Position numbers and translations under genes: made by a program. A DNA stretch of 64,000 nt from assembly GCA_964247055.1 (NCBI GenBank), contig OZ176051.1:7192001-7256000 (forward strand), read 5' to 3'. Within the stretch, counting starts at the first letter, position 1. Every line of letters begins with the position of its first letter. The stretch is from Paragordius varius. Its lineage: Eukaryota > Animalia > Nematomorpha. The notes beneath the pieces are model-generated. The model was not told the DNA's origin and did not search any database. It worked only from the letters and a program-made list of their open reading frames with translations. Shown piece after piece: positions 20,576-61,055 of this stretch.

Positions 20576-20641
<66 letters not shown>
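20576..20641. repeat. (AT)n microsatellite, about 33 units
   Basis: Direct reading. Shorter (AT)n runs at about 26035-26058 and 28300-28330. Confidence 0.98.
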
Positions 20642-20643
<2 letters not shown>

Positions 20644-21206
20644 TCAAGTTATTTATATCCAATTTTGGAGGTAGCGTAAGTGCAAACATCTGCAGGATTT
20701 TCTATTTATATTTTAAGATATATTAGATTTAAAACAGGCTGGAAGTCGCCAAACTCAAATTTGTTCCGAGGATTGAAATGAATGTGTTAAGTTTTAAACT
20801 ATTATGGCCCAAAAAAACTATAAGAATTTCGATACATCTAACTTTAAATATATATTTTATAATCATTTTTGATAATTCTGTCTCATAGTAATCTGGGTGT
20901 TAATCTATAAATATTTATTATTTCATCATATAATTTATTAACATAGACCTCATTTACTGGTCACTCATACAAGTTTGTTATTATTACCAAGTCAACTGAG
21001 ATTAGCGCGAAAATTTTTGCTTCCAAAAAAGACTGTTCTGATCTGATTGTCTACCAAACAAGTTGCAACAAGTTTGATGAGAAAAATAATTTTATTGTTA
21101 TAAAAAAATATGGAAATTATTGTATTGATATTATAAATCTTTCAATAAATATAAAATAAAATGATCACCTGTGATTTCATATCTTCATGATATCGGTATA
21201 TCAAGC

Positions 21207-24200
21207 ATGCTTCAAAAAAATTCAAATTTTATCGATGGCAATTCATTATTGCGTAATATTGTTTTTCAAAATTGGATAAAACTACATGTGAAATTAACCG
21301 TTGATATAAATTATGATATCAAATCCCTAACGAAACTTGTTAACCAATTATTTAATCAAACTTTATTTAATCGCTTTTCTTCTAATGAAGAACTGTATTA
21401 TCAATTGTCCCATTTCTTACACCTAGATATAAATTCTAAATTAAGGGGTAAATTTTATGAAATTTTCATTATATACCGAAAAATTTTAAAAAATTCCGAA
21501 ATCGCCACGCTTCTGTTTTAACAACAAAGAATTAATCCTTTGTACTATTTTAACCCTTGTTTCATTATTTGTCATTTTATTGAGTATATAACAATATATA
21601 TGTCACTTTTATACACTTTTATCAACTACAAAAAGAATATATCACTAAGGAATTATGTAAATTATTTATGATTTATAAAACATATAGGTATAAATGCAAT
21701 TTTGTTTAACAAACTTTGTTTGTTTTATGTTTGCAACAAAAACTATGGAACTGAAATCTTCACAATTTTATTAGAAGAGTTTATAATATGAAAAAGGATA
21801 GACCAACATAACAATGTTGTATACCAATAATTTTGATAAATTCTTTTTTTTAATTTTTGTTTAAATGATTAATTTTCTAATGTTAAATGCAGGACGACGA
21901 TATTAGAATTTCTAAAAAATAGTGGTGTCCGATTAATTTTTTTGCCTAAATCATCATAAAAATTAAAATAATTTTTTTATTATCAGCCTATAAATAGATA
22001 TACAGTCATGTAGACTTTATATTGTTAAAAATTTACTTTTTTTTGTTAATTGGGTATTAATATTTGGTAAAGAACATAAAAACAAGAGCTATATGGTATT
22101 ACCATATCATATTCTTTAAAAAGTAAAAGAAGTGTGGGGGAAGGGCGTCGGAAATCTTTAGTAAAAAATGAAAATCTTAAAATATTGTTATAGGGGAATA
22201 GTAATATTTTTGTTAATCTTTTAGCAAAATTTATATGTTGATTTTTTTTAAAAAAATTATTTCGCAGTACACATTTGAAAGAGGATTGACGTGAGAATTA
22301 ACATAATTAATTTGATGAATATTTTGTATGTTAAATTTTGAGAATATTACAGCAATTTATGTTAACATTTAAAATATTGTGTTACGTATTTAGATGCGGA
22401 ATTTTGTGGGTTTTTATTCTTAATAATTTAATAATTAGTAAAATGGGTATTTTAAATATATTTATGATTCATAATTAAATTCAATAATTACTATTTTTCA
22501 ACATGATAAATACCTTTATTAATCAAAATTGGTATTATTATTTTAAATAGTTGTTATTAGTAATTAAAATACAGGTTATATATTTATGAAAATTTAATTA
22601 GATTATAGATTGGTTTTGTTTTTATGTTTTTCATGGTTAATTTTTATGTGTTTACATTTTAATCAGGTAAAAATTGCGGTTTTTAAATTTAATCAAATTT
22701 AATTTTTTTTGTTTTTTTATTTAACATTGTTAATTGTAATTAAATACTACATATTTGGAAATTTTAAAAATACAGGTAAAAATTTCAATAATAATTTTTT
22801 TGTATCATTGTTATTTGTTATTAATTATGAAATATTTTTGACATCTAAATAACAGGTGAAAATTGCGGTTTTTAATAAAATTAATAAATTTTTAATATTT
22901 TGTTCAACCTGGCTAATTTATTCAAATGATAATAATTTTTACCTGTATATATCAATGTATCAAAAATATATAGTAATTAACAAATTTTACTAATTTATTA
23001 AAAACGGCAATTTTCACCTGTTTTTTAAATGTCCAAAATATTTATTAATTAAAAACAAATAACAATGATACAAAATAAAAAAAAAATTTGAAATTTGTTA
23101 TAAACCGGAATTTTTACTTGTATTTATTAAAATGACAAAATAAAATAATTACAAATAACAATGCAAATCCTAAAAAACAAAATCTCAATTTTTATTAAAT
23201 TTATTAAAAACTGAAAATTTTATTGTAGTTATTAAAATGTCCACAATATATAATTAATTACAATTACCAATGAAATAAAAATAAATTTGAAATTAACTGC
23301 CATTTTTACCTGTATTTTAAAATTTCCAATATGTAGTAATTAATTACAATTTGCAATGCAAATCCAAACATAAAAATTAAATTTGACTAAATTTAAAAAC
23401 CGCAATTTTTACCTGTATTTTTTAAAATTTCCAAATATGTAGTATTTAATTACAATTAACAATGTTAAATAAAAAAAGAAAAAAATTAAATTTGACTAAA
23501 ATTGCAATTTTTAGCTGATTAAAATGTAAAATAAATATTAACCATGAAAAACATAAAAACAAAACCAATCTATAATTTAATTAAATTTTCACAAATATAT
23601 AACCTGTATTTTAATTACTAATAACAATTATTTAAAATAATAATACCAATTTTGATTAATACAGGTATTTATCATGTTGAAAAATAGTAATTATTGAATT
23701 TAATTATGAATCATAAATATATTTAAAATACCCATTTTACTAATTATTAAATTATTAAGAATAAAAACCCACAAAATTCCGCATCTAAATACGTAACACA
23801 ATATTTTAAATGTTAACATAAATTGCTGTAATATTCTCAAAATTTAACATACAAAATATTCATCAAATTAATTATGTTAATTCTCACGTCAATCATCTTT
23901 CAAATGTGTACTGAGAAATAAATTTTTTAAAAAAAATCAACATATAAATTTTGCTAAAAGATTAACAAAAATATTACTATTCCCCTATAACAATATTTTA
24001 AGATTTTCATTTTTTACTAAAGATTTCCGACGCCCTTCCCCCACACTTCTTTTACTTTTTTAAAGAATATGATATGGTAATACCATATAGCTCTTGTTTT
24101 TATATTCTTTACTAAATATTAATACCCATTTAACGAAAAAAAGTAAATCTTTAACAATATAAAGTCTACATGACTGTATTATGATATATTGACATTAATA

Positions 24201-27200
24201 GAGTATATAGCCTTTTTGATGATTTAATTAATTTACAATTTTGCGACGTGTGCGGCGTTTTTTATGGCTTTAGAGTACAAAGTTAACCACCAGAAAGTTT
24301 ATATTAATCCCTCTATCATCAATAGTTTTAAACATTTTATATGGCTTACAAGTGTTGAATAATCCAACTTGAAACTATAATTAATTTTATAATTATTTAT
24401 TAAATCATAAAAATGTTTTTTTCTTCAAAGCATTTATTTTTAAAACGGTCAAATTATGATATGAACAACATTAATTTGTGTGACACACATTACCATAGTG
24501 GCTTTTTTTTTAAAAAAAGATAATTTTTTCGCTCAAGAATTTTTATTTCGTCTTTGTTTATAATGAAATATTTTTTACTTTGTACAATAATTATTATTTT
24601 TTAATTATTTTTGAAGCATAAAATTTGTTCGAATGGCAATTTTTAAATTACGGTTCTGGCATAAAATATATTATGATATGATAAATAAAAATAGATAGGT
24701 TGATTTGCCTTCTAAAATTTTGTTAAAGTTATATCGTATGACTGACTAATAAGGTATATTACAGTTGTCCTTATATTACATTGTTTTAATAATCAGCATT
24801 AACTCTGAATTTTGTAATTATTTAGCATTTAAATCGCTTTTGTCCTTGGGAAAATTATTGATACTCATATTTTACGTATTTTTTCGTATAATTATTTTGA
24901 TTTATTAAAAAATGCGTCGTTTTAATTTTTTTATCCGCCTAATGCTAAGTCTAATCATTCAAAGTAGCTTCGATTTAAAAATTTAAACCTTTTTTTACTT
25001 TTTTTGTAAGAAAAAGTAAACGATAAAAAATATTATTGGTTTTAATATTTTAATCAAAGTTTCAGTACTGATACGACTGATTTAAAATTAATTTCTATCT
25101 AAAGTCTTTAAATTAATACTTAAAAGTTGTAAGTATTTATAGTTGTTTGTTTAATATTTTACAACATTAAATTTTTTTTCATAACTAATATATAATTTAT
25201 TTTTTATGACTAAAATAAATTATATCAAAACAATTTTACGGACACCCCTAGATACGATCGATGATAACATTGATGATGAAGTCGCCATATATAATGAACT
25301 TTTGTGGGCCATCATAGTAAATTATCAAATTTTGCATCCCAAATGCTTTTTCACGGGCTCAGAAAGTTCCACTACTATTTCCCCCATTCCCTCCGACCAA
25401 GAATTAATAGATGTCACTTTGATTGGGTTGAATAGCGTGTTTAATTTGTCAAATAATGCCTACATCAATAATTTGACGGATGATTGGGCCGATGGGAAAT
25501 TGTTACAGTATAATAAATAACCTTAAAACTTAAATTATAAGCATTCTTAAAGTTGTAAATATTTATTATATTTAAGATGTCGGCTTTTTCCGTTTATTTT
25601 ACTTTCAGAACCAGCGCAATGAGTACTTTTTAGCAATGTATATAATAAGATGTTGAAATATTGCGTTTGGAATCGTTTTTAAATTTATTTTTTTTCAAAA
25701 TGAGTAAACTAAAATCCTCGAAAAACATAGCGAAAAATTTGGATTTAATTTAATTTTATTTATACGGATATTATATTAATCACATTTTATTGCTTTTTTT
25801 TGGAAAAGATGGAGAGGCCTTATTTCTAATAAATAATATATTTTTTATTCATCTGAGGTTAGCTATCTTTTTAAATTTCCTGTGTTAATCACGATAAAAA
25901 ATAGGAATTTTTCATTTGGGTCTTTGGAGCAAATTGGCTTTTTACTCTTCAGTTCATTGAAAAAATATTTTTAACCCAATAATTCCCAATCATTATTTTA
26001 AATAAGTTAAAGCAACGCGTGACAGGGCACAACTTATATATATATATATATATATATAGAAACATATTTATATTTTTTTTTCTCAAATAATATTTATTTT
26101 AGCTTATTGATTGACTGGTGTGTTGGGATCCAGAAAAAAACGCTTCATACTAAATCGAACTCAGGGTAGATATTATATATTAATCATTATAACTAATTAA
26201 CCATGCGTATTATAAAAAGGCAAGACCTAAGTATTTGTTTCCTTTTGGTAATTTTTCAATCATTAATCAATATATATTATATATATATTGTAATTTATTG
26301 TTAAAAAACTAAAATTTTGTAAGATTACTAATATACATTATATTAATTAATACAATATATAACTGTAAGAAGATCATCATCATTTAACACATTTTTTTAT
26401 TCTACAGTTAATTAACCTAGATTAAAGCAGAGATATACATTTCAATTTATTTCATTCACACACTTTTCTATCTAAATTGCGTTGAGAGAGTTCTGTTATA
26501 TTTATCTTTTCTTAGTAGTGATTTATAAATAAAAATGAAAAGTGAAGATAAATCAGTATATAAATGTTTGTTTTGCTTATCAATGAATTTTATCAGTTTA
26601 AAACAAAAGTAACATTTATTAGATTTATAAACTTAAAATCTACAATAACAACCGATAACTAAAAAGGAATTTACTTAAGAAACCTGCATTGTAAATGTTT
26701 TATACATAGCTTCGAACCGGGTCGAAAAAAGTGAAACCGGAATCGGAACGCTTATATGGAACCGTGTTACTAAAATTTTGGAATAACCTAATTGGTTCTA
26801 TAAAAATTAAACGGTGGCGAAACCATTTCACATTTAGTCCCGGTTTCAGATTGGTTCCTGATTTTTCATTAAAAAATTTCATACAACAGTTCTACAAGAA
26901 TAGTAAATCAAAACATAACTTATTGGAATAGCCATAACTTAAAAAAATGGTTGCATTTTTAACCTGAATGCATTGAAATTATTGCTTAAAAAATTCTATA
27001 AAATTAATTTTATATTTATGTTTTACAACTTAAGCCGTGGTCGGCCTAAATTCATCGATTCATATAAGAGCAGATTTTTGTATTGAGGTCTATTTTGGTT
27101 TTAATAGTTCTATCGACTTATATAACATCAAATAGCATATCTAAAATTAGCAAAATAACAAAAATAACCAATCTCTAATATAATAGGTATGCGATTTTTT

Positions 27201-28295
27201 TAAATTATTTATCTGTACATAAAGAAGCGTATAATCGTAAGTTCCATATTATGGTATAGAACCATTTTTTCCTTCTAAATCCATAAACATTATCTTATAA
27301 ACCATTAACTCCTCTTCACCCTTTAACAATTTAAATTCACCCTAAGAACAATTCAAAATTACCTTCGAACAATTTAAATTTACCCTAAAAAATTATATGC
27401 TTTATCAAAATTACCTATAAAATTTTTGAAAATTAAATTTCGTTTAAAATTTACATGTACAAAAAAATAATAAATTCTATAAAGAAATAGCTCATATTAA
27501 TGTTGGGTTATATTATCCACCAAACATAATTTATTTTTAGGGTAAATTTGAAATGTTTCAGGGTGAATAAGAGGTGTAAAGGGTATATAATTAAATTTTC
27601 ATAAATATTTTCTACAGTAAATTCAATGCGTACACTTTTAATGCCGCCCTACAAAGGGGCAAACAAGAACTCCGTATCCCTGATCTGTTTGGTGAAGATG
27701 GGTTGGATGCAATCAAGAGCGCTAACGGTTGCCTAGACAACCGTGCTATGTTAACGTATCTTTCCTTGTTTACACAGAATGCCTTACCTTTGGCTCTCGA
27801 AGCAGGGAAAGTATCGTCCGGTAAAATGTATTCAAATCCGTATCCTGATACGAAAAAACAATCGCTCTTTGCAAATTCAAGTATCATGTATATCGGGCCA
27901 TTTTGTACAACCTTATTGGCTTGGATTAATGAGAAATTGGATTTGGCTTTGACCGTCGATAATTTTTCTGTGAGTCAATTAATTTATATTAGCATAATAA
28001 TGTGCTTAATGCTATTTTTGTAGACTTTAACAGGTCTTTTACGGTTAATTGGATTAGAAATGATTAAAAAAAAAATTCATTAAGTTACCAGTTTTCGCAA
28101 TTTTCGGGTAAAATTTTACCTTTTTTCTATTTTCATAGCATTCTTGGGTGGATGGAATGTTGCTTGAAGCACTTGTTTCACTGTTTTCAAATCATTACAT
28201 TTTGGACGATATAAGAGGAAAAGCCAAGCATATCACAACTGAAAGTGAAAAGTCCAACACTAATGTATCCAAAAGCGCAGAATGTAAAATTTATA

Positions 28296-28334
<39 letters not shown>

Positions 28335-31300
28335 TGAAATATTTTTTGAAATATATATATAGGGATACATAAAGCCAAAGAACTGGGTATTAAACCTTTC
28401 CTATCCAACATCGACAACACCACCAATGGATATTACGTTATGATGTACATTAGTCAATTTATCCGCCTTGATAACACGTATCTGAGAAAGCGCATTCTTA
28501 ATGAAGAATTGAGTATAATATATATTAGAAAAGATATTTATTTAACAATATATTAGATGGCACTAGTATTTTGTGGGTGATATTCGTTAAATATTCAATC
28601 GGTTTAATTTTCGATATGGTTACAAGTTTCACACAAAATATAACTTTATTTACGTATTGGATAATTTTTTATTATCATTCATTAACTAATAACGTAATAT
28701 CTAGTGTGGCAGTAAATTTTGATTTACATTTAACAATTTAAGTAGAGAACAAATTACCCAATATTTTTAATATTATGTCTTAAAATTTTATTGTGTGAAT
28801 CTAGCCCACAATTTTGATGCCATTAAGCGTGATTTGAAAAAGACACCTGCAAAATCAGCTTCCGCTAACAATACTACAAACAACAACCAAATGAATGCGC
28901 TTAAGGCTCAAATACTTTCAAAACCTAAATTAAAATCGGTAACACAAACCCGTATTACACCTAAATCATTTACAACCGTATCATCAAATAATGTTTCAAA
29001 CATTAATTTTTCTCACGCAAAACTGAATCAATCGGTAAATTCAGTTGTTAAAACACCAACTATAAATTGTAATGGAGAAATGGTGGCTCATAATGGAATG
29101 CACGTTCCCTTGCAAAATAATACCACTAAATATAACAGTTCCCAAATCAACAATAACAACAACTCTGTTAATAAAGTCGCTCAGACTAAATGTAAATCAT
29201 CGTCTCCTTCTATGTTGAAAAATGATGGCCATACACATACCAATAAAATAAAACGGCTTAATGCAAGTCCTATGGATAAAAATGATTATAGAATGATTGC
29301 AGGTAATAAAAATTTGCCCAAATCCCCCAAAGATCTGAAAAATGGAATTGCTTCCAACAATATCAACCACATAAAAGTCGGTAAAAATGGGAAAGACAAT
29401 GGTCGAATAGAAGTTACTAGAAAAGTACATGATGCAACCCATAACGCTAATCAAAATGATTATCGTTCATGTCATAGTTTGCGTAAGAAAAATGATTGGA
29501 TTTTGTCAAAATATGCTGCTGCTGCATTGGACAATGGTTTAAAACAACCTCTTCCTAACCGTAATCCTAAAACTAATTATACGGTTAATAAAAAACTGGA
29601 TAAGAATCTTTCTTCTCAAATTAATGGCGAATCAACTCATGAAACAAATGGCCACATTGATAATTTTATGGATAACAATAAGCATACTTTGCATATTTCC
29701 CATGTGTTAATTTATCAAAGCCTAAAGCCGTTCCTTCATATCAATAAACTTTATGCGCTAGATTTTTCGGTCATTGATGAAAATAACCAGCAGTCTTTAA
29801 CCGATGTACAGGATTTCCTTCAGCCAATAATGATTGGTATTGGTAGATTTACTTAATATTTAATATTTTTGTTGTGTAAAACCTAATTTTTAAATCAAAT
29901 TGAAAGATTTATTAACTTAAATTATTATTAAAACACAAACACAATAAATTTCTTACTTTTGCAGGTAAGTTTTAGATACATTTGTTAAATTAAAATATTA
30001 AAGTCTTTCTTTTTATTTTCTAACTGGAAAAGTTTTTGGAAAATATTAAATAAGATGATTATACCGTTTATTTATTACAAATATTTTATGTAAGAGTTTA
30101 ATTCAAAACCTTAATTTACTACTTTTTTCCGAAAAAGTATTAATCTTTGCTATAATAATAGGACCTAATAGCGAAAAATCATTGGAATTCGATAAACACC
30201 CCACAACCTCACATCGATATCGGTTAAGTTTACGACCCCACGAAATTGGTATTTTCAAAATTAAATTAAACTTATACTGATTATATAAGGCATTGAAAAT
30301 ATGTTGCATTTTTTTAATTTAATATTTTATTAAAGGAGAACATATACTTCGATTTGTAATTGACGGGATACCAATTTGCGTGCTAGTTAACAAACTCATC
30401 AATGATGTTAATCCAAACGAGAATCCATTGTTGGATTTGCATTTCAAAACATTCGATGCTTCTAAAGTTATGTTTCAACCCCTTAGATACTGTGTTTTAG
30501 GGCAACCAGCAAAAATTTTAAGTAAGTCACATCTATGACAAAAAGAAAATATTACCATTTTTTTGTAATAATGTGATATAATATGCTAAATTTTTTTCAT
30601 TAAAGTAAGGGCCAAAGACGCAGGTGCCGGAAAATTGGAAGTATTCATCAATAATGGAGCTACTAAATCGTCTATTTTGGCCCTGGGTAACAAAATGTTT
30701 GAGGTTCAATTCATACCAACTGATACAAGCAAAATTAATTCATCGTCCAAGAATGAAACTGTGTTATCACAAGAAAAAAATATTAATACTGATAATACTA
30801 GCAGCATAACTAATGTTTGGAAATGGCAAACCGTTGAAATTCATTTTAATGGTGAAAATATTAAAGGTATATAATATCTCTAAAGCTTAGTCTAAAAAAC
30901 CAAAAACTTTTATTAGATTTTCCTATAAAAATACGCAACATTTATGTTTTAAAACAATATATATCAGTATTTATAACTTTTGTGAAATGATTTAGATTCG
31001 CCTTGGAAGTGTCCCTTAATTAATCCGGTTGATATAAAATGTAAGGGTAAAGGTATCGATGACCTTGGTCCATTTAAAGTGAAAACACCATTGTCATTTA
31101 CTGTTCGAACCAGTATTTGTACCCTTGATACTTCCGATCTTAAAGTGAGTTTTAATTAAAATTTGTTTACTACATAAGACATAAATAATGGATAAAATCG
31201 TAATTCCAGCTTTGTTGTATAAGATTTATGATAAAAATTTTTGTCACATTCTTATATATTTTAGGTGTCCATAACCTGCCTTCCATGTGCTAGAAAAGAG

Positions 31301-34300
31301 ACTAATATGATGTTGAGATCCGAAATCGACGAAAAAGACACTCAATCACCGCACAACAATTCAATGATAAAGCCTATAGTTACAAGGTTATCCCCGCTTG
31401 AAGTTGGTTTATTTTCGGTTCATTATGTGTTACCAAAGGCTGGAACTTACCGCATAGCGGTCGCACTTAAAATTCGGGCCAAAGAAAATTCTTTATTAAA
31501 CGGTTCATCAATGTTTGCTGGCGCATTAGGGACCCGATCTCTTTCTCGTGAAAAAATTTGTGACTACATGTCAGATTACGACAATAGAATGCATGACATA
31601 GATTCTGATGACTCGAGTGATTCCCAATACAATGAATCTTGTCATTATGTCCAAATACCTTTACGGGTATAACCACCATTTTCAAAATTTTGATGATAGT
31701 TTTTTTAAATTTTTCATTCCATTTAACTAACTAGTTTGAGGAAAAGGTACCAATCTATGAATTGAGCATCAAAGCGTTTGATCCAAACATGATTTCATTG
31801 TCCGATAGTTTGGCCCTCATAAATCCAAGTAATACTAAATTTTATTCAGCAATACCAATATAAATTCGATAATTATTTTCCGAAATTCCTTTTTCCTATA
31901 TGGGCCATTTTTTAGAAAAATGTTTCAAATCAAAATACGTATCATATTTAGTTACAATACCATCTTTGGGTCTACCATTTGAGATACCGATCCGGATTGA
32001 TCCTAAAGCAGGGGAAGGACAATTGGAAATTAATATAGATGATGGTGATACGGAAAATACTGTAAAACTTGTTAATGACCCAACGAAATCTACTTTACCA
32101 GTTGATGTAGACAAGAACGGTAATAACTTTTTAAACTTATTTTTATTATACCATTTGCTATTGAATTATATTAAACAATCTTTCTCTCTATTAGATAATT
32201 TGCGTGAAAAAAAGGAAGGGAAAATATGTGTGATTACTTTTGTACCGACCCTAGCAGTTCACGATGTCCAAGTAAAATTTAACGGATCCGACATCTCCGA
32301 CTCACCAACTAAAATCCATTTTTTGTATGCAAACTCAGCGCAAATAGACGAAAAACTTCCACAAATTATGGAAAATGAAGATGAAAGCATTATGCCTAAT
32401 GGAAACGAAACTATTAGCCCAATCATCTCTCCTGACAATACGTTAAATTTAAAGCCGACAAAATTATCGTATTTTACGTTAGATCGGCTTAAAAACTACA
32501 CAATATTTGATAGTTCCGTTTTAAAAAGTGATAACAGACTTTGTTTATTACGTTATGAAATTGGTGATGGTAAATGTCCAGAACCCGCTACTGTGGAGCC
32601 TATCAAAATATCGGTAATACAATATTATTCGTATAATTTTTATATTCTTCCAATTTATATTTATTATTACATTTATGATAGATTATGGATATGAATTATT
32701 TTGTTTGTAACTTACCCATGGGTTGTACAAATATCAATATATATGCCGACAATGGTGATGAAAAAGCTAAAGTTATATATCACGATATTGAATTTTATTA
32801 ATGATAAGTTACATACATTGTTTTCTATTTTATTATGTCAAACGTTTTAACTTTTACTCAACTCCATACTCATAAAAATATTCACCCAATCCTTATATGT
32901 GTTGTTAGGTTTTCGACGTATTTACTAAACGGTTAAATGATTCGCACATAGCCGTACAACGTATTCAATCATACCTAATAATTTTGGCTTTTACAAATTA
33001 TCAAACAAATTATGCCTTAACATGCCAATGGAGGAATGGTGAGAATGGATGTTTGCATACGATAAAGTTACCCTTAATGTGTGAATGGCCTACAGATTTA
33101 TACGGCATATTGTTTTTTGATTTTGGGGCTAATTTCGGCAAAGTTGTTCAAGATATTATTATGGAGCCAAAACCACCTGTAAATTGTTTTGGATATGCTG
33201 GAGTAGATTATACATTTTCAGGTATGAAATATGTTTTTAAAAAGCATAAATTGTTCCAATTTAATGAAAATGTATCAAACATATGATAATTATTATATTA
33301 CTATAGCTAAATTTTCTGTAAACCCACATGCACCGAAAGATAATAAACCCTTAACTTTGGATTTCATAACACTTTACCATGGTGACAATGATCAAATTTT
33401 GAAAAAGGAAGTCAAAATAGTTAAGATTGATACGAACGATAAATTAAAGTCTTACACTTTTAAATTCAATCCGCTAGTCGCTGGTTTCTATGCCTTTAAA
33501 TTCAATATCAAGGGCCATGGAACAATAAAATGTATATTATTGCATATTGTGGCCTAATATATTCGTCATCATCAATTTAATTTAAGTTACATTAACTGTG
33601 TTTCTGTTATTTTAGGTTCATTTTATCATGAAATCTATATATTTGATCACTCACCCTGTATGGATTTGAATACATCCGCTATGGCATTAAATCAATATTT
33701 TACGGTGCTACCAACTTCTGCTCTTGATATGCGAAATTTTGTGCTCAAAAATATTAATCCATGGTCCATTTTTAATTCCAATGACTTTTCAACCAATTCC
33801 ACTTGTTTACTTAACGAAAATTTAATATATACTTCAAAGTATGGTCATGACTCTGGTACACCTATAATTGCATGCAAAACTAAATCCTTGTTTTTCCTAA
33901 AACATATTGGAGGTCACCAAAATCTAAGGTTTTACCTTTTACCACTCAAGACATGGTGGAAGATCCAAGAAAGTGAACCTATCCTAAATAATTTATGGTT
34001 AAGTGCATCTTACAATCAGGAAACGCAAAATTTTGAGGTTGTTTGAACAGAAAATTAAATAAATTTATAAATCCAAAAATACAAATAGATTTTTATTTTA
34101 TCCTCATAGCATTAGTTTGTCTATTTCATTTTCTAAAATAATGTTATATAATAAATACACTACTTATATATTTAACCATATTATATAGCTTGCTGTGAAT
34201 GATGAAGTCCCGTGCGGAAAATACATTTTAGTAGCATTCTTATACAACATTCCATTAACATTTTTGTTTGTGCAATTATATGATGAATCCCAAGTTACCA

Positions 34301-37300
34301 TATTAAATGATAACATCGGCGGTCAAACCTTAAAAGAGTTAAAAACTTATACTACTCTTAGTAAGTTAATTGATGATTGTCATTTTGTTAAATGTTTTAT
34401 TTTTGAAATCAAATATATCTATGCTAACATATTTAAATTGTATTCATTTGTGACAAAAAAAATTTACGGGTAATACTGGTTTTTGGGATAATGTATTTTA
34501 ACGAAATTGGGAAAAAGCGAATATTATGAATAAGGATAATGTTTAAATTTAATATACCATTTACTGTTCAAATTCACTCTTAAACAAATCAAATTTACCC
34601 TTGAACAATTCAAATTCACTCTCAAATAAATAACATGTTTTTTAAGATTAGAAATTACCTATATTTTTAAAAATAAAATTTTGTTTTAAATTAAAATAAT
34701 ACTGAAAAAATAATAAATTATGCCATAAAGATATATTTTGTATTAATAATGAGTTATATTAGTTCAAAAACTAATTTATTTTTAGGATGAATTTAAATTG
34801 TTCGAGGGTGAATTTGAATTGTTCAAGGGTGAATTTGAATTGTTCAAGGGTGAATTCTAATTGTTCAAGAGTGTTGAATTGTTCGAGGGTGAATTGGAAT
34901 TATTCAAGGGTGGATTTGAACTGTGAATGGTATAGTTCTAATTAATTTAATTAGATCAAGCATAGAATATAAATATAATGATATTTTTGAACTGTAAAAT
35001 AAATAGCTAAAATATTATTTTAAAATTTTCATTTGTCTAATATTTAACCCTTAACATCATAAACCCCCTTAACATTTTTTGAGTTAAAAAATCATTAGTC
35101 TAAGGCCGTATGAAAAATTTAAAGGGTTTTATTAAAATGATATATAAAATAAATTTTCTGTGATAATAGGGTTTTTTAATAACAAACGGTCATTATTATT
35201 TTTATAATCAACAAACATACACTATCATTTAGCTATCTTTTAACTGTTTTTGTTAAAATAATAGATACATACATTAAAACATCATTTTTAAGCTCATGTT
35301 AACCTCTTGATATGAGCGATATCAAATATTTAATCGTAAAAATTCATACAAAATTCATGGTTTTTTTAATTCATCATAATTTATGCATTTTCTTTATATC
35401 ATATATGGCCCAATAAATCATACTAGTTGTTCACCAAAAAAGGTTTTGTGTCATAATATTTATACAATAATACTTCAATAATATTTTATAAAAAAACATC
35501 TTTTTTTAATATATATATATAAATTGTTTAGTTGACGTTGAAATGGCGGGTGGGGATGGTCCTTTCGAAATAAAATTGAAGGATTGTAAGGCCTTAACCC
35601 AATACCAACAAAATGAGGCATCATCAACAGCCCATGTTGAAAAAACTTATTATGTAACCGCTAAACCTTACATAGGCATAACTGTCCATATAACACCTAA
35701 ACATTGTAATACTGATGCGATGCAAAATATCGAAACATCCGATAAGAATTACACTGAATTTAAATCTTGTATATACTGTATCAATATAAGTCTCTTTTAC
35801 AAACCCACTTCAACTCCGTTTATTGCTAATGCAATAAACAAAAAAACAGTGGATGTTATTGATTTGGGAATAGATCTTACATATTGGTATAAAAGTATTC
35901 CATTTCAAACTTTAAATAATTTGGGTGGACAAAATCGGCAAAGCATACAAAACAGCGCGAAAAACTTTGGATTCTCAATTGATATTCCCTCTCTTGATTC
36001 AGTTATAAGTGACATTAAAGAACAAAACAGACCACCTGCATTAATTGATGCACATATTTTAGCGTGTGAAAAAAATGACATCTCTCCCCAAAATGATTGG
36101 GCACCGGCTTATCGCCCCACTAATCTGAGTGTACTTTGTTTGTTTGATAAATCGATTGATAACGCACAAAATACCACTTTAAGGGACACGATAGAAGCAT
36201 TGAAATGTAAACCGGAATCTTTTTTGACTGATTCCATCACACAAACTAAAAACCATCATAAAAATATTAATCGAACATCAAATCTAGCTATCCCCTTTAC
36301 ATGTTCCATTGAAAATCCAGCATCTCAAAAAAATTGTAAAAATCCACCCATTTTATATACGGTTGGAGTAAGGAAAATCCCGAAAGACAAAATGTTTACC
36401 ATTTTCACTGATTGTAAATCTCTAACAGACTGGTTATTGAACCAAACCCAATCTAAGCTGGACAAAAATAAATTAATCTCCGAATATTATGAACAATTGG
36501 TGGCATTTAATATAAGTTTTGTTCCGTGTGAGGTGGGACTTTATCAACTAGCAATGCATAAAACTCCGACAAGCATGAAAGTAATAATTTTTTAATATAA
36601 GACTCAAAAAATTATGTATTAATTTAAATTCTAATTATATATATATTAACTCTTTAGTCAATCGAAGATATTGAATCATCCCATATGTTAAAAATACCTG
36701 TCCATGTATACGATTGTTCCAAAGTCATCATTAAACCATTAAAGTGCTCTAGAGACATTAAAAACGATGAAAACGTATCATATATACCAATCAAAGAACA
36801 TGGAACCATTTTAGGTAAATCAGAAATTGCTGGATTCTAATAATTTTTTTAAAACCCAGTACCGTTAAAATTTTGGTGTTGCGGTTAAATTGTTTTATAA
36901 TCAAATGATATTCGGATTCGTTTTTCGTTTAAAATTAAATAGTCAAATCAAAATTAGAATATATTTATGTTATAATAATAATAATAATAATAATAATAGA
37001 AAACCCAGACTATTAAAATTTGGGTAAATTGTTTGAACTTGAATATATTGTTTTTAACAATCATTTTTTTTGAATTGTCCTTTTTGTTCCAAAATAACTT
37101 AGTCACGGTTCTAATTTGTGATCCTAAATAAGATCTTTGAATTGACCACAATTTAGTTTAACAACCGTTGACACAATTTTTTAATAATCATAAATTTCCC
37201 TTATTTAATAGGTTAATCAAATAATTTTCTGCGGTAAGCTTAAGAAATTTTTAAAATTATTTCAGGGACGTTAAAGAAAGTTACTTACCTTATTTTCTGT

Positions 37301-40300
37301 AATTTTTATATTAGAATATTTAAAAAATTGTATCCAAAACTATATATATAATTTAAGTTACCTAATGGATTGGCCAATTTTTAGGTGTTCAGCATTAAAA
37401 ACCCCATGAGACTATAAATGCACCTTATTTTGTCCAATATTTATCAAACTTTCTCATTCTCTTGATAAACTCAAGTTTATATAAAATCTCGTATAATTTG
37501 CTAAAAATACTTCATTTTAAGCTATAACCATAAAATTATTATTGTTGTAAAAAACCATAAAAAAATTTGTTCGGGTTTTCCCACATTAATCTTGTGTTAT
37601 ATCTTTTATAAATTTTATCTTATCTTTATTCTATAAAATATAAATAAATTCTGGCAAAATATTTGTTGCAGTATTTTGAGCGTAAACATCTGGATAAAGG
37701 GATAATAAATTAGTATTCTTTTAATTAATATCCTAATTATTTTTTAATTTTATTTATGATATTTTTCCTGTTATCCTGATTATTAGATATTAATTAGTAA
37801 AATCTCTGAATTTACTTTATTTAATATTATATCTCACATGATTCAAGTTTTTCTGAAAGCAACCCTAAATCATAGAAATAATATTTGGTATTGGACTATT
37901 TATATTGGTAAATGGAGAAAAAAAAAAATATTTTGTTTGAATTAAAACGATATTATACATTTTTTTCCTTATAATTACCGATTTGGCGGTTTACTTTATA
38001 GTTATGGCATTTTAATGGTTGCTTATTTTACACTATAGTTGGGCAATTCGCAACACAGTAATGTATGGAAAAAAATGTGAAATAAGCAACTATTAAAATG
38101 CATATCTTTCAATATTCAACAGCGCTTTGTAAATGTATAACAGTTTTACACATCACATTGCTTCGGTTTTCTTCGTTAATTTCATCGGAGTTATATTTGT
38201 ATTTATAATCTCATACATATTATGTGCATTTTTTTGATGCAACAATGTGTATTATTATTATATTTACCATATGAAAAGGTTATTCAAACAAAATAAAAAA
38301 ACCGAAAGAAAGAGAGAATCTAATCATATAAGCAAAAAAATAAACTTAGAATTATCGGTTTTATAGTTTTTTTTACTATTTGTTTGCAAATATAACAATA
38401 TTTTTACAATTTTTTCTTTGAGTACATATTACTTGGTAATATAAATACTCACTAATCTTTATTATCATAAACATATCAATTTCCAAAAAAATATGTGTTA
38501 ATTTTTTTTGATCAATTTTTTGATATGGCCTTGCCCTTTAACACAATTTTTTTTTTCGTTCTAAATTTTTGAAAAAAATAAATTTGAATCATCAATGCGC
38601 TTACCAAACAATAATTCCAATGCTCTCCTTGACCAACCGAAAAGGAGTGCTTTGAACCAAGAGTTATTAAGCGTATTTCAAAAGCGCAAAGATTTTGCAC
38701 TTTTAAAACGAACCTCCCCCATAAAACCATTATTCGATGAAACTGCTAATTCTAATTTTTACAAATATCAGCATAACGGTAATTGATTCTGTATACATAT
38801 AATTGTTTTTATTTTTGTCTAGGTCAATCATAAGCTATTGTGTCCTTAAATAATTCGATAACATCCAATCTTTTTCCTTCCAATTACTCTTATTTTAAGC
38901 ATCAATCCTATATTTCTCTGTTTTTGTTTTTTTATCATATATATTACTAAAGGGTTGAACAAGAGCTCAATTTACTATTTTTTATGTGTTTGCTGGTTAT
39001 TTAGTTATAAAATATAGAGTTATACAATATAATCAATTCCTCGCAATCTTAATACATTTTTCAAATCTTAATTATTGATATATGCATATGAATATAGTTG
39101 ATTGCTCCAAAGCCGGGGGCTGTAAAACATTGGACATTAATATTGTGAATCCTTTAGCAGCAGCTAATGAGGAATCCGCCATCTCCCACGAAATAGATTA
39201 CAGTGATGCCGATCACCATAGGTATAAGGTTACGTTTGTGCCTGAAAGCTTGGAACCGTATTACCATGTCCATATCTCCATCAACAATGAACCAGTCAAA
39301 GGTAATGATAAATATAGGGCTTGCTTTTAAACGAATTTTAGTCCGAATTTTTTGGTTGATTATGAATGATAGGTTTTCGCTTAAATTTCAAATACGAAAT
39401 GGGAGCTTGTGTGGGTGATTTTGCATGAGTTTATTGGAAATCCAATTTTTCCGTTATCTCTTTATGAATGCCGAGAGTTAAAGTTTTTATTAGGTTAAAT
39501 CCAATTTAAGCCTTACTCCTTAAACTAAAAGGAAATAAAGGACACTCAAAGCTGTGTATTTATTTATAATTCTTAATCATACTATTTGGTATTTTTCATT
39601 TTTAATGAATTTTTTAGCGTTATATTGGTGTTGATCCAACCAATAGTATAAACCTTTTAATGCATTTTACGTTTTTTGGATTTTATATTGATACACATAT
39701 TTTTTTGATACAAAAACATATATATGGGATTAAAGGGTTTATAATGATTAAAATAAAATTATGGACGCTGGTTTAAATAGCCAACCAAATATCTAATCAT
39801 ATCGATTGCTATTAAGAATGTGAATTCTTTCGCAATGAATAACATGTGAAAAAAAATATTTTTATTACATTTTTTTGAATAATAAAAATTGTAGATTCAT
39901 AAAACCCAAATAAAAAATCAACAGTTTTCATCCGATTTCATACCATAATTATTGTGTTATTTCGAGCCTATGTAAATCCATTCTAACTTTTAAAGTTTTG
40001 ACTAATAAAACCAGTTATAATAGTTACAAAAAATTTATATAACCTATATACATATTACAGGGAGTCCATTTCTAGCTAAATATTGTCCAGATTATGTTGT
40101 TGACGAGAACGACAATCGCTGCTTAGATGACCATAAAGGAAAGGTTGATATGAGTGAAAGTATTCGACATATAGATAGCATTGATGGTTCGGCTTACGAT
40201 TCAAGCGCTATTCGCCAAAAAATAAAAACGGAAAAATCTTGTCCAGGTATTAATAATATACGATTAGATATTTAAAATTGTGCTGTATTATTTAAAACAA

Positions 40301-49300: not shown

Positions 49301-52300
49301 ATAGTATCCCCACATATGAAATTGTTGGGAACGCTAGTTTAGACATGTTTTCCGTCTCATATGTCCCAATGGAAATTGGTGAATACAAAGTGTTGATAAC
49401 TTTAGAAAATGATTCTGATACAAAACATGGTTAGTTAAATGAATTATTATTATATTATAATTTTTTATTACAACTTACATATATCAGGTCCTTTTACGGT
49501 CAAAATTTGTGACTTAACCAAAATAAAGCTTATAACCCCGGTAAACAATATGAAAAAATTGGTGATTGATCAAACTTCTCGCATTCTTATTGATTGTAAC
49601 AATGCCGGTCCTGGTAATTATATTTTTCAAAATTATTTCTTATTTATTTTTATAAAATCTTATTAAAAAACGCAATATTAAATGGATTTTAACTCTTAAA
49701 AAAATTAATCAAAATATATCCTAAACAAAAACATTATATAAATAATAAATGAATGCTCTTTTTAAAGGTCATTTGGAAGCATTCTTAAAATACCTACCCA
49801 GTTTATCTGACATGAAAAAATTTGAAGGATTGAGTAACGTGGGTGATAAAGATGAAATATCTGATGCCGTTGTTCAGAAAATGACATCACAGGATTATTC
49901 TATATTACTTACGGCTAAAAAATTAGGTATAATTTATTTTTATTTTTTGGTAACTAAATATAATTATAAACTGCTTATTTATTTTTTTATGCCTTTGGTT
50001 TGGATTTTACATACTATAGGAAAAAAAGTTTCAAACTAAATGGTGCACCGACTATAAAAATAAATTTGCCAAAAATTTTCTCGGCTCGAATTTTAATCTT
50101 TTTTTCAAATTGTTCTGATCTCCGTCTTTTTTTTATTTGGTAACTCCATTAACATAACATTCTAATTAGTACAATTCTTCACATTTTAATATAGATTTAT
50201 GATTTTAAGTTCCATTTTTAATATATTAGGTGAATACCTTTTACACCTTAAATGGAATGGTTATGATTTACCAGAATGTCCGTATCTTATTGAATGTGTA
50301 GATAAAGTAATTGAACAACCGTTAGTATTCAAACAAACTACAGTTGATACCGATGATATATTGTCAATCCTTAATAAATACCTTTCGGATGTTAAAATAT
50401 CGCAAGATTGGTCCAATTATTTCACCTTAAATGAAAATCTAAAATCCTTCTTACCCATCGATAAACCATATTCATTTCAAATTGATATGGCGAAATTGTT
50501 TGAAAGTTATATATAATTTTTAAATACTATCGAAATTCAAATATTTATTTATATTTTGACTAATTCATTAAATAATTATGTTAACAGAATTAAAATCCGA
50601 ATGTCCCAATATCGAAACTTTCAAGCCAAATTTATTCCCTAGTATGTATATCGTTTCGACAAACCCTAAAGATACGGCTGATGTAAAAGAAAACCCATTT
50701 TTATCATCAAGCTCAATACATCAAACTGTTATAACGTACGAATTCATAATAAGGCGTAAAGGTTAGTTTGATGGCAAAAAAGTTTTCATATTAAAAAAGA
50801 TTTTGCATAAATATATACTTTTCCATTAATTGTTTAGGACAATATTATTTGAATCTCGGATACCCGAATACTCAAAGTGAATTGGCTAACAAGTCGCCTA
50901 CTGATGGCGAATCATTCAAAACCGGTTTTATACATATATTCGAATCTCCATACAAACTTAATTGTTTCACAAAACTGTCTACATCACTTCCATCATGTAA
51001 CGTTACTGACGTACAATCTGATAAAAACAACGGCACTAAAAATGATTTTTCCCCAATAGAATCTCAATCATTCATAAAGAGTAGTCATAACATGGAAAGT
51101 ACACCTTTAACGAGTGTATCCAAGGAAAATATACTCAAAAAAATGAGTAATATGTTTATCTTTTATAATACTACATATTATACTATATTGGGCTATTTTA
51201 AATTAGCATCTTTATATGTTTAATCCGAGAAATATCGTTTATAAAAATAACGTTTGATAAAAAATTTATTATCTAGGAATGTTCATTTATGACATAAAAT
51301 GTTTCCAGAAAAATATGTAAACATATGCTTTTAAAAGGTGATTTTTTGTCCAGATTAAAGAGAAAAATACGTGAATATGTTTGATTTTTTGTTCAGATTA
51401 AAGAGAAAAATACGTGAATATGTTGTTTCTTTACTATTTATTATTTTTGCGAAATGTCATTAGAGTCTAAATCATTGTCGTCCGAACATCGCAACTTCTC
51501 AGGCCCCTGTGATGTAGTTAATGCAACAAATGCCTCTTGTGTCAAAGTCTCAGGACCTGGTATCAAAAATGGTGTTTTATCAAACTTTAATAGTCAATTT
51601 TCGATCGATACAAAAGGTGCATGTGCTGGCCAATTGACAGTTAAGATTCGTGGTCCAAAAAGTAACTACGCGCGTGATTTATTTTTTAATTTCTGATTTC
51701 GTTTGGTTTGCAAAGATGGAATTTCAAAATATTAAAAAAATTCGTTCTTACATATATTGTCATGATTTAGTAAAAAAATTAAATTTTACTCAAATATCAG
51801 GATTAGATGCCATTTTGTGGTTAAAATTCTTTGGGACTAGTGATTATTTTATATTATGCTTTTATATATTTGTTTAACTAGTTTTAAATTTATAATTAAG
51901 CCTATTTAATCTTGAAAACTGAAAATGCCTGGAGAATAGGCAACTTACCAAACTTTTTTGCCATACAAAATAAAGAATTAACATCTATATATATGTATTT
52001 GGCTAGGCGCTTTTCACGTTCGAATGAAACGAGATCCTGTACGAGACAGAGTTATTCATTGCGAATATCAGCCAACCGAAGTTGGTCATTACACAATTCA
52101 TATCACGTGGTCTGGTAACCATGTACCAGGTTCGCCATTCAATGTTAGCATTTATGGAACATCTGAAGATTATTTAGCGGTGCAATCGGGACAGACGCAT
52201 TATTCAAGAAAAATAAACAGTAATCAAATTCATTTTTTAACAATTAATTTTGGCTAGAGAAATGAATGAATAATAAAAATAATTTGCGAAAAATATTTAA

Positions 52301-53017
52301 AAAACATGAGTCGATAACACGGTAATAGGAAAAACTCAATCGGGTTAACACGTGGGCTATAAGTAGCAATAAAATATTATGTTTTTTAATTATTTGTAGA
52401 TATAACTTTATGTTTTTCCCTTCATTGTTTTCGTATTAAACCAACATTATCCATGATTATTTTTATATAACATTTTAGAATCACCGACAAACTCATCCCA
52501 TACCACTTCGGCCGACGATCTAGATCGTTTTATAACGCAAGCATTTTCATCCGATAATTTGGGTGATTTAGGACTTCTTACTGCAACAGAGAGTAGTGGG
52601 GATGGAACGACCACCTCTCTTAGTAGTAATCTTAAAAATGATAAATTTGGTAGTCATCAGAGTCGGAGTGAGAGCTCTTCGTTGCGCAAAAAAAAATTTG
52701 ATACCATTGAACGGTATGATGGGAACTTTGTACTAAGTGCCCCAAGCCACATAAATCATGCAAATATCAGCAAAACGGATACTCTTTTTACGAGTAATAG
52801 ACCATCTTATCAAAATGGATTTTCGAATAATGCCCTAAATTCATCCAAAACTTATGATAGTTTATTGTCACCTCCTAAACAAGTGGATTCAGATACTGCT
52901 GCCTATAATTCGGAAACTTTGAAAATGTCGTCAACTCATAAAAATAGTTTGAAACAACAAAAGCTACTGTTTGCGAAACCGTCTATACTCTGTACCCCGG
53001 ATCCGTTATATAACTAA
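21207..53017 (+). CDS. jbug: Jitterbug-type filamin: three calponin-homology domains plus many filamin Ig repeats; about 50 exons, about 4,400 aa (approximate)
   Basis: CH exons 21207-21447 (IVFQNWIKLHVK), 25252-25507 (LLWAIIVNYQI; INNLTDDWADGKLL), 27618-27969 (AMLTYLSLF; LLAWINEKL), 28139-28283 (SWVDGMLLEALV), 28363-28512 (VMMYISQF). Filamin-repeat motifs recur from 30336 (DAGAGKLEV, VDARKAGVGNMEI, VDTSRAGPG, GSPF). The last repeat (51464-51661, 52007-52219: FSIDTKGACAGQLTVKIRGPK..FHVRMKRDPVRDRVIHCEYQPTEVGHYTIHITWSGNHVPGSPF) resembles the recalled Jbug C-terminus. Final exon 52479-53017. Some internal splice sites and the start codon are uncertain. Confidence 0.85.
22003..24176. mobile_element. 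2.17-kb foldback / long-TIR non-autonomous DNA element in filamin intron 1
   Basis: Ends ta|cagtcatgtagactttatattg and caatataaagtctacatgactg|ta (TA duplication). Inverted arms align for about 0.9 kb, with about 6 mismatches in the first 88 nt. Interior has roughly 100-bp subrepeats with the core acaggtaaaaattgcgg. No ORF. Confidence 0.92.
27302..27583. mobile_element. MITE family B copy
   Basis: ccattaactcc..aaattcaccc at left, gggtgaa..gtaaaggg|ta at right; in a filamin intron. Confidence 0.7.
34557..34930. mobile_element. MITE family B copy with expanded 21-bp repeats
   Basis: ta|ccatttactgttcaaattc ... gaactgtgaatgg|ta; about six tandem gggtgaatttgaattgttcaa units at about 34790-34925. 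Confidence 0.88.
36970..36997. repeat. (TAA)n microsatellite
   Basis: Direct reading; intronic. Confidence 0.9.
38595..38778 (+). CDS. Candidate alternative first coding exon of the filamin gene (CH-less short isoform)
   Basis: ATG-started 61-codon ORF in intron 36815-39097. It ends AAC G|GTAATT, a phase-1 donor that fits the phase-1 acceptor at 39098 (G+TT GAT TGC = V-D-C-S-K-A-G). No AG acceptor lies in the roughly 80 nt before the ATG. Confidence 0.6.
48133..48389. mobile_element. MITE family B copy
   Basis: ta|ccatttacagttcaaattc ... tgtaaatgg|ta; fills most of the filamin intron 48017-48406. Confidence 0.85.
51343..51425 (+). repeat. Tandem duplication of about 41 bp
   Basis: tttttgt(c/t)cagattaaagagaaaaatacgtgaatatgtt occurs twice; intronic. 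Confidence 0.9.
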
Positions 53018-60750: not shown

Positions 60751-61055
60751 CCATTTACAATTCGAACTAACCTTGAACAATTCAAATTCACTCTCTAACA
60801 ATTCAAATTCATCCTATAAATAAATTATGTTTTTCGGGTTAATATAACTCATCATTAATATGAAATAAATTTTTACATTATTTTTTCAGCATTATATTAA
60901 TTTTAAACAGAATTTCATATTTTATAAATAATAAAAGATAAAGGTATTTTTTAATCCTAATGAAACACATTAATTATTTTAGGGTGAATTGGAATTGTTC
61001 GAGGGTTTTGAGGGTGAATTTAAATTGTTCAAGGGTGAATTTGAACTGTAAATGG
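60751..61055. mobile_element. MITE family B copy
   Basis: ta|ccatttacaattcg ... ctgtaaatgg|ta. Confidence 0.85.

Follow-up and report, generated by a model that had tools for sequence, protein, structure and literature searches.

On balance, we lean towards reading the two LKKT/LKSV strings behind the third CH-like domain of a Paragordius varius filamin gene as part of a drifting spacer in a filamin of the FLN-2/Jitterbug class, and not as a tandem-WH2 nucleation module. The two strings, the open frame that carries them and the splice-compatible joins of their exon are real: as the initial annotation of the window (the whole 64-kb stretch of DNA that was analysed) had described, HNFDAIKRDLKKT stands at the start of an exon and MNALKAQILSKPKLKSVT follows about 15 residues on, in a 349-codon frame whose remainder is rich in Asn, Ser and Lys. 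What the strings do is a separate matter, and for the second of them, the one whose register and core are those of a canonical WH2 motif, we consider a chance match more likely than real actin binding.

A divergent filamin gene with a long spacer exon

Filamins are F-actin crosslinkers and scaffolds. The gene had been annotated as a filamin with a third CH domain, and its filamin identity is confirmed, with Pfam support confined to the C-terminal exons, where PF00630 matches at E=1.8e-6 (51418-51693) and E=5.3e-10 (51982-52254) are both above the gathering score. Beyond these and a weak match at Ig repeat 2 (E=0.064), the filamin repeats were recognised by pattern only; Ig repeat 1, which begins within the spacer exon, runs on through 30162-30248 and 30336-30521 to reach ...RPHEIGEHILRFVIDG..., a typical filamin-repeat ending. 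The CH part of the assignment was likewise read by pattern, in exons 21165-21518, 25185-25517, 27618-27969, 28139-28283 and 28363-28512, which form three blocks; in the exon at 27618..27969, the patterns seen by eye are RIPDLF...MLTYLSLF and then LLAWINEKL. Pfam and PDB searches with the exon pieces, each of which is part of a domain, returned no CH match, and a profile made from three CH-like half-domains gave too poor an alignment. From pattern reading of these split exons we infer three putative CH domains.

The spacer exon starts at 28805, is 1,032-1,038 nt long and stays open for 349 codons, a run with a chance of ~5e-12 at the stop-codon density of the window; its other two frames contain 20 and 55 stops. 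Its 349 residues include 55 N, 38 K and 31 S. Upstream, the donor A|GTATAA at 28512/28513 and the acceptor AG at 28803-28804 join the CH3-like exon to the spacer exon, and the resulting junction, EEL-T|HNF, is the sole frame-preserving splice, with a split codon A+CC that encodes Thr. Both strings sit in the frame beginning at 28807. At the 3' end, a phase-1 donor G|GT at 29836 or 29842 leads to the acceptor at 30161/30162 and gives Gly; further on, the open frame continues beyond the donor at 30248/30249 into the intron. Seven sequencing runs matched the locus, none of them recorded as RNA, and contigs built from three runs of the locus or a relative and from one possible RNA run showed no splice joints and did not extend over 28706-28973. 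Rfam at gathering scores found no non-coding RNA in the window.

Table 1. Features of the filamin gene around the spacer exon, in window coordinates.
Feature	Coordinates	Strand	Remarks
Exon, end of second CH-like domain, short linker and first helix of third	27618..27969	+	acceptor AG 27616-27617, donor GTGAGT 27970
Exon, middle of CH3-like domain, SWVDGMLLEALVSLF...	28139..28283	+	acceptor AG 28137-28138, donor GTAAAA 28284; pattern only
Exon, end of CH3-like domain (HKAKELGIKPFL...YYVMMYISQF) and tail YLRKRILNEEL	28363..28512	+	acceptor AG 28361-28362, donor A|GTATAA 28513
Intron	28513..28804	+	292 nt; GT..AG ends; stops in all frames; sole phase-compatible join
Spacer exon	28805..29836	+	~295 disordered residues rich in Asn, Lys and Ser, followed by the opening strands of Ig repeat 1; donor alternatively 29842/29843
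Motif 1, HNFDAIKRDLKKT	28807..28845	+	exon residues 1-13; LKKT core at residues 10-13; helix register non-canonical
Motif 2, MNALKAQILSKPKLKSVT	28891..28944	+	exon residues 29-46; LKSV core at residues 42-45; canonical WH2 register
Start of filamin Ig repeat 1, LHISHVLIYQSLKPFLHINKLYALDFSVID...	29689..29836	+	within spacer exon; pattern reading
Exon, middle of Ig repeat 1	30162..30248	+	acceptor AG 30160-30161, donor G|GTATTT 30249
Exon, end of Ig repeat 1 and start of Ig repeat 2	30336..30521	+	acceptor AG 30334-30335, donor A|GTAAGT 30522
Exon, most of Ig repeat 2 (RAKDAGAGKLEVFINNG...HFNGENIK)	30606..30866	+	splice sites read; weak Pfam Filamin match E=0.064 (30590-30871)
C-terminal filamin repeats, same gene	51418..52254	+	Pfam PF00630

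Comparison with a contig ~6% divergent from this locus, made from sequencing runs and covering sequence outside 28706-28973 (the interval that holds both motifs), revealed that eight of the nine changed codons in the middle of the spacer are non-synonymous and that a one-codon insertion has been accommodated with the frame kept; in the CH-like exon at 27618..27969, the same contig carries four synonymous and three conservative changes. Searches for further relatives were negative within their scope. A word-indexed protein search with the 349-residue exon and with its first 100 residues gave no match among targets of 0.55-1.75 times the query length, a range outside which full-length filamins lie, and a search of 1.84 billion representatives with the CH2/CH3 exon, a query of two half-domains that is short for this library, gave one spurious repeat-protein match only. 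An exact look-up found the product of the spacer exon not to be on record, and a scan of JGI metagenomes gave pattern matches only, none of them encoding a relative.

Register, statistics and family searches of the two motifs

We derived WH2 registers for comparison from the structures of WIP and N-WASP: in the WIP WH2, L36, L37 and I40 (-10, -9 and -6) precede L46KKT (PMC7407642), and in N-WASP a helix at residues 37-46 precedes LKSV at 50-53 (PMC6770570). Motif 2, which supplies the earliest Met in the open frame, has hydrophobic residues at -13 (M), -10 (L) and -6 (I) from the Leu of LKSV and a Lys at -9; hydrophobic side chains thus occupy three of the four anchor sites, exactly in register, and the stretch expected to be helical, residues 29-38, is the counterpart of the helix at 37-46 in N-WASP. 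The hydrophobics of motif 1 stand at -11 (L), -7 (F) and -4 (I) from the core Leu, forming a face two residues nearer the core than in WIP and N-WASP, and the motif has the highest helical hydrophobic moment in the spacer exon (0.70). The two cores are 32 residues apart. Of the tandem WH2-like motifs proposed in the initial annotation, motif 2 fits the WH2 pattern in register as well as core, and motif 1 in its core but not in its register; with a single canonical motif out of two, the tandem reading loses weight. The idea that motif 2 is a recent copy of motif 1 was rejected, there being no DNA repeat between the two.

Because the patterns were defined after the motifs had been seen and the scan covers many genes, the shuffle probabilities for the LKKT/LKSV strings are suggestive and not proof: composition-preserving shuffles of the spacer exon gave two LK[KS][TV] cores at P=0.0016 and, over the whole exon, a core with hydrophobics ahead of it at -13, -10 and -6 at P=0.0017, and shuffles of the first 60 residues alone gave P=0.00016 for two cores and P=0.0003 for the canonical motif. 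The strict canonical pattern occurs once in the 67,457 residues of the six-frame translation of the window, and this occurrence is motif 2 itself. In AT-rich translations, every 1000 residues contain 0.2-0.35 strict LK[KS][TV] cores; looser WH2 patterns are frequent, and the ELM WH2 class matches unrelated viral proteins too in pattern scans. The two strict cores that occur in plausibly coding sequence of the filamin gene both lie within 36 residues, directly behind the actin-binding head.

The Pfam scan suggested along with the tandem claim matched neither motif: WH2 (PF02205) and Thymosin (PF01290) gave no match at E<=10, whether the query was the exon, its first 50 residues, its first 100 residues or either motif on its own. 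This silence on WH2 is weak evidence, because the Pfam WH2 model is short and HMMER filters hide most matches above E ~0.1. A PDB sequence search with a 50-residue piece did not find a WH2 peptide. With a 60-residue piece, a language-model atlas search placed WH2 and thymosin clusters at ranks 2-4 among the named neighbours, with scores of 0.77-0.83 that are under the 0.9 reliability line; the Thymosin-family cluster was fourth in the atlas feature search, at 0.77. These sub-threshold clusters appeared only with both motifs together, and searches with each motif alone gave nothing. AlphaFold2 predicted disorder throughout the spacer exon (mean pLDDT 35.5), with a pLDDT of at least 50 only at residues 5-11 and 27-39 of the 349, which correspond to the two motif helices; from a single sequence, a helix was not predicted at motif 1.

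Possible origins and roles of the strings

The reading that we favour places the strings in a highly divergent FLN-2/Jitterbug-class filamin of an AT-rich animal, where a spacer of about 295-310 disordered, fast-drifting residues would connect the third CH-like domain to Ig repeat 1. The main role of this spacer would be that of a flexible, basic linker governing how far the actin-binding head can extend from the rod. Motif 1 probably prolongs the helix leaving CH3 as a basic amphipathic segment, and motif 2 would be a WH2-pattern match that arose in Lys-rich disordered sequence, with a candidate function at most; we infer that WH2 activity is absent from the spacer. This reading is favoured by the lack of Pfam and PDB matches to WH2, the displaced hydrophobic face of motif 1, the predicted disorder, the drift in the middle of the spacer, the long intervening sequences described for FLN-2 and Jitterbug (PMC3143143), the frequency of loose WH2 patterns and the sub-threshold atlas scores. 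It is a doubtful possibility that motif 2 is instead a genuine WH2/beta-thymosin-like short linear motif born in the spacer, perhaps assisted by motif 1 as a less effective partner of non-canonical register. On binding, an amphipathic helix would then form from residues 29-38 and occupy the actin cleft between subdomains 1 and 3, with LKSV extended along the surface, and the F-actin-binding head would be adjoined by a site for monomers or barbed-end subunits; an isoform without the CH head that started at Met29 would bear this site N-terminally, and C. elegans fln-2 isoforms without the actin-binding domain are known (PMC3143143). The canonical register (-13, -10, -6) and LKSV core of motif 2 speak for such a motif (PMC7407642, PMC6770570), as do a core spacing of 32 residues vs 28 in N-WASP (PMC6770570), a disordered location in which local increases in pLDDT coincide exactly with residues 5-11 and 27-39, the appearance of WH2 and Thymosin among the closest named clusters of the atlas, the shuffle P of ~0.002 and the lack of any further strict core in the likely coding long open frames of the gene. 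Against these points stand the Pfam and PDB sequence searches, which are without a match, the Lys at -9 of motif 2 and the displaced register of motif 1, atlas scores below the reliability line that vanish for each motif alone, patterns that are post hoc in a scan of very many genes, and a neighbouring spacer that evolves almost neutrally. Weighing both sides, we think it rather unlikely that this filamin has gained a de novo WH2-like motif 2 that would bind the actin monomer or barbed face, possibly helped by motif 1.

The basic amphipathic stretch after CH3 (...YLRKRILNEELTHNFDAIKRDLKKT) may, alternatively, extend or regulate the CH3-like domain, its likeness to LKKT being incidental; it might form an extra helix packing on CH3, make side contact with acidic F-actin surfaces, act as a calmodulin-, lipid- or kinase-regulated switch or constitute a nuclear-localisation-like patch. 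We judge this improbable: the stretch has the top helical hydrophobic moment of the exon, is contiguous with the C-terminal helix of CH3 across the splice junction, is rich in Lys and Arg with Thr or Ser after basic residues and contains a motif 1 whose register is non-canonical for WH2, but it has no family or structural match, and AlphaFold2, given the single sequence, predicted no helix at motif 1. More remote still is an artefact of the gene model, by which part of the motif region would be missing from the mature protein or the exon would occur in a minor isoform only. An in-frame 30-nt GT..AG micro-intron at 28829-28858, for example, would remove DLKKTPAKS, and it lies exactly over LKKT; the open frame that runs beyond the true donor at 30248 shows that exons in this gene are not delimited by an open frame alone. 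The donor of this micro-intron, GTGATT, is poor, however, a single such GT..AG pair is expected by chance, and the 349-codon frame is far too long for non-coding sequence.

The consequences differ with the reading of motif 2. If it binds actin, the gene would present a new domain combination, a WH2-like motif that originated within drifting spacer sequence, in which one protein couples F-actin crosslinking with G-actin capture or filament-end binding, and this could alter the view of how the little-studied FLN-2/Jitterbug branch works. If it is a chance match, the locus provides an annotated example of an extremely divergent filamin from an under-sampled phylum, and illustrates the ease with which LKKT-type strings arise in Lys-rich disordered sequence.

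Comparison with known actin-binding proteins

Spire and Cordon-bleu, like the present spacer, carry a series of WH2-like motifs within disordered sequence. They contain three or four canonical repeats with defined linkers, however, and nucleation of the Spire/Cordon-bleu type is unlikely here because at most one motif is canonical; we regard a tandem-WH2 nucleator as unlikely overall. The beta-thymosins and Ciboulot share with motif 1 an LKKT core after a short amphipathic helix, but their second, C-terminal helix is not evident here and there is no Pfam Thymosin match; the helix-to-core spacing of thymosin beta-4 is also longer than that of motif 1.

The short linear F-actin-binding motifs (SFMs, of the Lifeact/ITPKA type) are likewise short amphipathic helices in disordered regions, to which motif 2 would correspond in targeting the same actin cleft, and motif 2 has hydrophobics at their positions P1, P4 and P8 (M..L...I). 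An SFM reading (VxxLxxxFE) was nevertheless rejected, since it would align motif 2 as M..L...IL and motif 1 as F..I...LK, with misfits at P8 and P9; motif 2 has Ile in place of the strongly conserved Phe of P8 and Leu in place of the equally conserved Glu of P9 (PMC13364712).

The likeness to domain V of N-WASP and to WIP lies in a disordered region with a helix of ~10 residues that ends four residues before an LKK[VT]/LKSV core, and motif 2 matches these WH2 motifs in hydrophobic register, its LKSV being identical to the core of the second N-WASP WH2 (PMC6770570). In contrast to these proteins, motif 1 has a linker two residues shorter, motif 2 has Lys at -9 and is without a Pfam WH2 match, and no proline-rich or central/acidic (CA) region is present around the motifs.

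As for the class of the host protein, none of the papers searched describes a WH2-type motif in FLN-2 or Jitterbug. C. elegans FLN-2 and Drosophila Jitterbug carry three CH-type domains at the N-terminus, and their filamin repeats are poorly conserved, with long sequences lying between them (PMC3143143). The comparison with these proteins is one of architecture, the CH-like domains here being without Pfam recognition on exon pieces: the present gene combines CH-like patterns in three blocks, repeats detectable by Pfam only at the C-terminal end and inserts of 300 residues.

Exon structure and repeats

The window (G+C 22–33%) carries one very long gene on the forward strand, occupying roughly 16.5–53 kb. 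The exon of interest, here called the spacer exon, lies between the last CH-like exon and filamin Ig repeat 1; its start can be placed at 28805 because only one AG acceptor is compatible with the donor of the preceding exon, and it reads T/HNFDAIKRDLKKT... (the slash marks the splice junction). Its frame runs for 349 codons without a stop, which has a chance probability of about 5e-12 at the stop density of the window; the other two frames contain 20 and 55 stops. At its 3′ end the exon enters Ig repeat 1, and joining it to the next two exons yields ...RPHEIGEHILRFVIDG..., a typical filamin-repeat ending. Spliced across the short intron between those two exons, the product (...RPHEIG/EHILRFVIDG) agrees with the filamin-repeat consensus, whereas read-through does not; the open frame overruns the true donor at 30248, meaning that exon ends in this genome cannot be read from an open frame by itself, a caution against ORF-based exon calls.

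A 21-bp minisatellite (unit ~GGTGAATTTGAATTGTTCAAG) is dispersed in both orientations over at least seven sites of the window, most of them intronic, and yields NLNCSRV... strings when translated. At the 27524–27568 site, run depth is thousands-fold with many partly matching contigs, marking the minisatellite as a repeat family of very high abundance across the genome. Introns also hold microsatellites of pure (AT)n/(TA)n.

Positions of the features discussed, in window coordinates
Feature	Position	Strand	Detail
21-bp minisatellite	4354–4447, 9806–9906, 27315–27394, 27524–27568, 34568–34631, 34784–34924, 60977–61036	both	
Microsatellite	20576–20641		intronic
Microsatellite	28290–28335		in intron separating last two CH3-like exons; reads break there
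Donor of last CH-like exon	28512/28513	+	A/GTATAA, phase 1; exon end ...YLRKRILNEEL, read from sequence
Acceptor of spacer exon	28803–28804	+	AG
Motif 1 (LKKT string)	28807–28845	+	spacer exon
In-frame GT..AG	28829–28858	+	30 nt, exactly over DLKKTPAKS
Motif 2 (LKSV string)	28891–28944	+	spacer exon
Start of Ig repeat 1	from ~29689	+	first strands, 3′ end of spacer exon
Donor of spacer exon	29836 or 29842	+	phase 1; joins next exon
Next exon	30162–30248	+	
Intron	30249–30335	+	87 nt; 5′ part in frame (IFKIKLNLY)
Following exon	30336–30521	+	continues Ig repeat 1
Third WH2-like string	38565–38783	+	open frame between Ig-repeat exons
Same third string, reading ...ALLDQ...ELLSVFQKRKDFALLKRT	38595–38778	+	same open frame
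Low-complexity frame	47061–47846	+	262 residues, Ser/Asn/Lys-rich
Low-complexity frame	52457–53014	+	186 residues, Ser/Asn/Lys-rich

Comparison of the two strings with WH2 motifs

The initial annotation proposed that tandem WH2-like motifs behind the third CH domain of a filamin might bind or nucleate G-actin. Both strings were found where it had placed them, in the spacer exon frame, and the 349 residues of the exon include 55 Asn, 38 Lys and 31 Ser. AlphaFold2, run on the single sequence, predicted disorder throughout (mean pLDDT 35.5); pLDDT 50 was reached only at residues 5–11 and 27–39 (counted from 28807), the helical parts of motifs 1 and 2. The two motifs share no repeat at the DNA level, ruling out a recent duplication of one from the other.

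In WIP, the cleft-binding helix presents L36, L37 and I40 ahead of the core L46KKT49, that is, hydrophobic residues at −10, −9 and −6 from the core Leu (PMC7407642); in N-WASP, helices 9–18 and 37–46 precede cores 22–25 (LKKV) and 50–53 (LKSV) (PMC6770570), so that the helix ends four residues ahead of the core and the cores lie 28 residues apart, compared with 32 for motifs 1 and 2. Measured against this canonical arrangement, with its LKK[TV] or LKSV core, motif 2 is in exact register, with M(−13), L(−10) and I(−6), Lys at −9 and a predicted helix at 29–38, whereas motif 1, with L(−11), F(−7) and I(−4), is set two residues too near its core and its helix span is shifted. Profile scans for WH2 and Thymosin gave no match at E<=10 for any piece, although HMMER filters mask very weak matches, and no PDB sequence matched the motif region. 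In a language-model feature search with a 60-residue piece, WHAMM-like WH2, partly-WH2 and Thymosin clusters took ranks 2–4 of the named clusters, at scores (0.77–0.82) below the 0.9 reliability line; neither motif submitted singly retrieved a cluster with a family. Nor is there a fit to VxxLxxxFE, an F-actin-binding motif described recently, P8 and P9 being wrong (PMC13364712).

The in-frame GT..AG over motif 1 has a poor donor; were it a micro-intron, the LKKT core would be removed, a possibility to which we give little weight. Motif 2 begins with Met29, the earliest Met in the open frame, and in principle a transcript without the CH head could initiate at this residue; such transcripts are known for fln-2 (PMC3143143). 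Further along the gene, a third WH2-like string, ...NALLDQPKRSALNQELLSVFQKRKDFALLKRTSP..., has an LKRT core with hydrophobic residues at −13, −12, −10 and −9 and Arg at −6, and has no Pfam match.

Chance, drift and the likely reading

Shuffling the spacer exon gave two LK[KS][TV] cores with P=0.0016, and a core with hydrophobic residues at −13, −10 and −6 in exact register with P=0.0017; shuffling only the first 60 residues gave P=0.00016 and P=0.0003, respectively, all for patterns defined after the motifs had been seen and in a scan spanning very many genes. Strict cores occur at 0.18–0.35 per 1000 residues in six-frame translations of the window, those elsewhere in the long open frames of the gene falling only in probably non-coding frames, and the strict canonical pattern has one match in 67,457 six-frame residues, motif 2. 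We estimate that a few coincidences of comparable quality would be expected per proteome; one right behind an actin-binding head would be less expected, yet not negligible across a large scan.

No protein of comparable length resembling the spacer exon or its first 100 residues was found, an exact look-up of its product returned no record, and a metagenome scan yielded no relatives. Parts of it are present in seven public sequencing runs, none of them RNA, and among contigs from four runs placed on 27500–31500 none covers 28706–28973. One run, X3, holds contigs identical to the window together with contigs ~5–6% divergent (for example 27535–27837, 29331–29569 and 30296–30623), which could stem from another species or from a deeply divergent haplotype within that sample and would be useful for selection tests. 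In the divergent genotype, eight of nine changed codons in the spacer middle (29331–29569) are non-synonymous, alongside an in-frame codon insertion; the CH exon has four synonymous and three conservative changes, and the Ig1/Ig2 exon five non-synonymous codons of six changed. The spacer sequence therefore drifts freely while its frame is kept.

A tandem-WH2 nucleator is unlikely, since just one of the motifs is canonical and neither is supported by a profile, and the wider actin-binding or nucleation interpretation is weakened. That motif 2 functions as a single WH2-like motif is a candidate reading suggested by its register, and a rather doubtful one. The most likely reading, held with moderate confidence, is a head-to-rod spacer of the kind typical for filamins of the FLN-2/Jitterbug class, disordered, basic and drifting fast, in which LKKT-type strings arose fortuitously.

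Filamin identity and related proteins

Pfam filamin repeats exceed the gathering score in the C-terminal exons only (E=5.3e-10 and 1.8e-6), with a weak match at 30590–30871. CH-like patterns can be read (LLWAIIVNYQI, DDWADGKLL, RIPDLF...MLTYLSLF, LLAWINEKL, SWVDGMLLEALV and AKELGIKPFL...YYVMMYISQF); queried as single exons, no piece matched Pfam CH or PDB CH proteins, and an exhaustive search of the CH2/CH3 exon against 1.84 billion representatives returned a spurious repeat protein only. As the CH domains are each divided among several exons and were searched only in single pieces, we infer CH identity from these patterns. Two long low-complexity frames, between or after the filamin repeats, suggest that this gene also encodes several inserts and a C-terminal tail that are disordered.

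In the searchable literature we found no paper that connects Jitterbug or FLN-2 with WH2 motifs. Drosophila Jitterbug and C. elegans FLN-2 are described as having three CH domains and repeats that are poorly conserved and separated by long intervening sequences (PMC3143143), and the architecture of this gene, its CH domains being recognized by pattern, agrees with that description.
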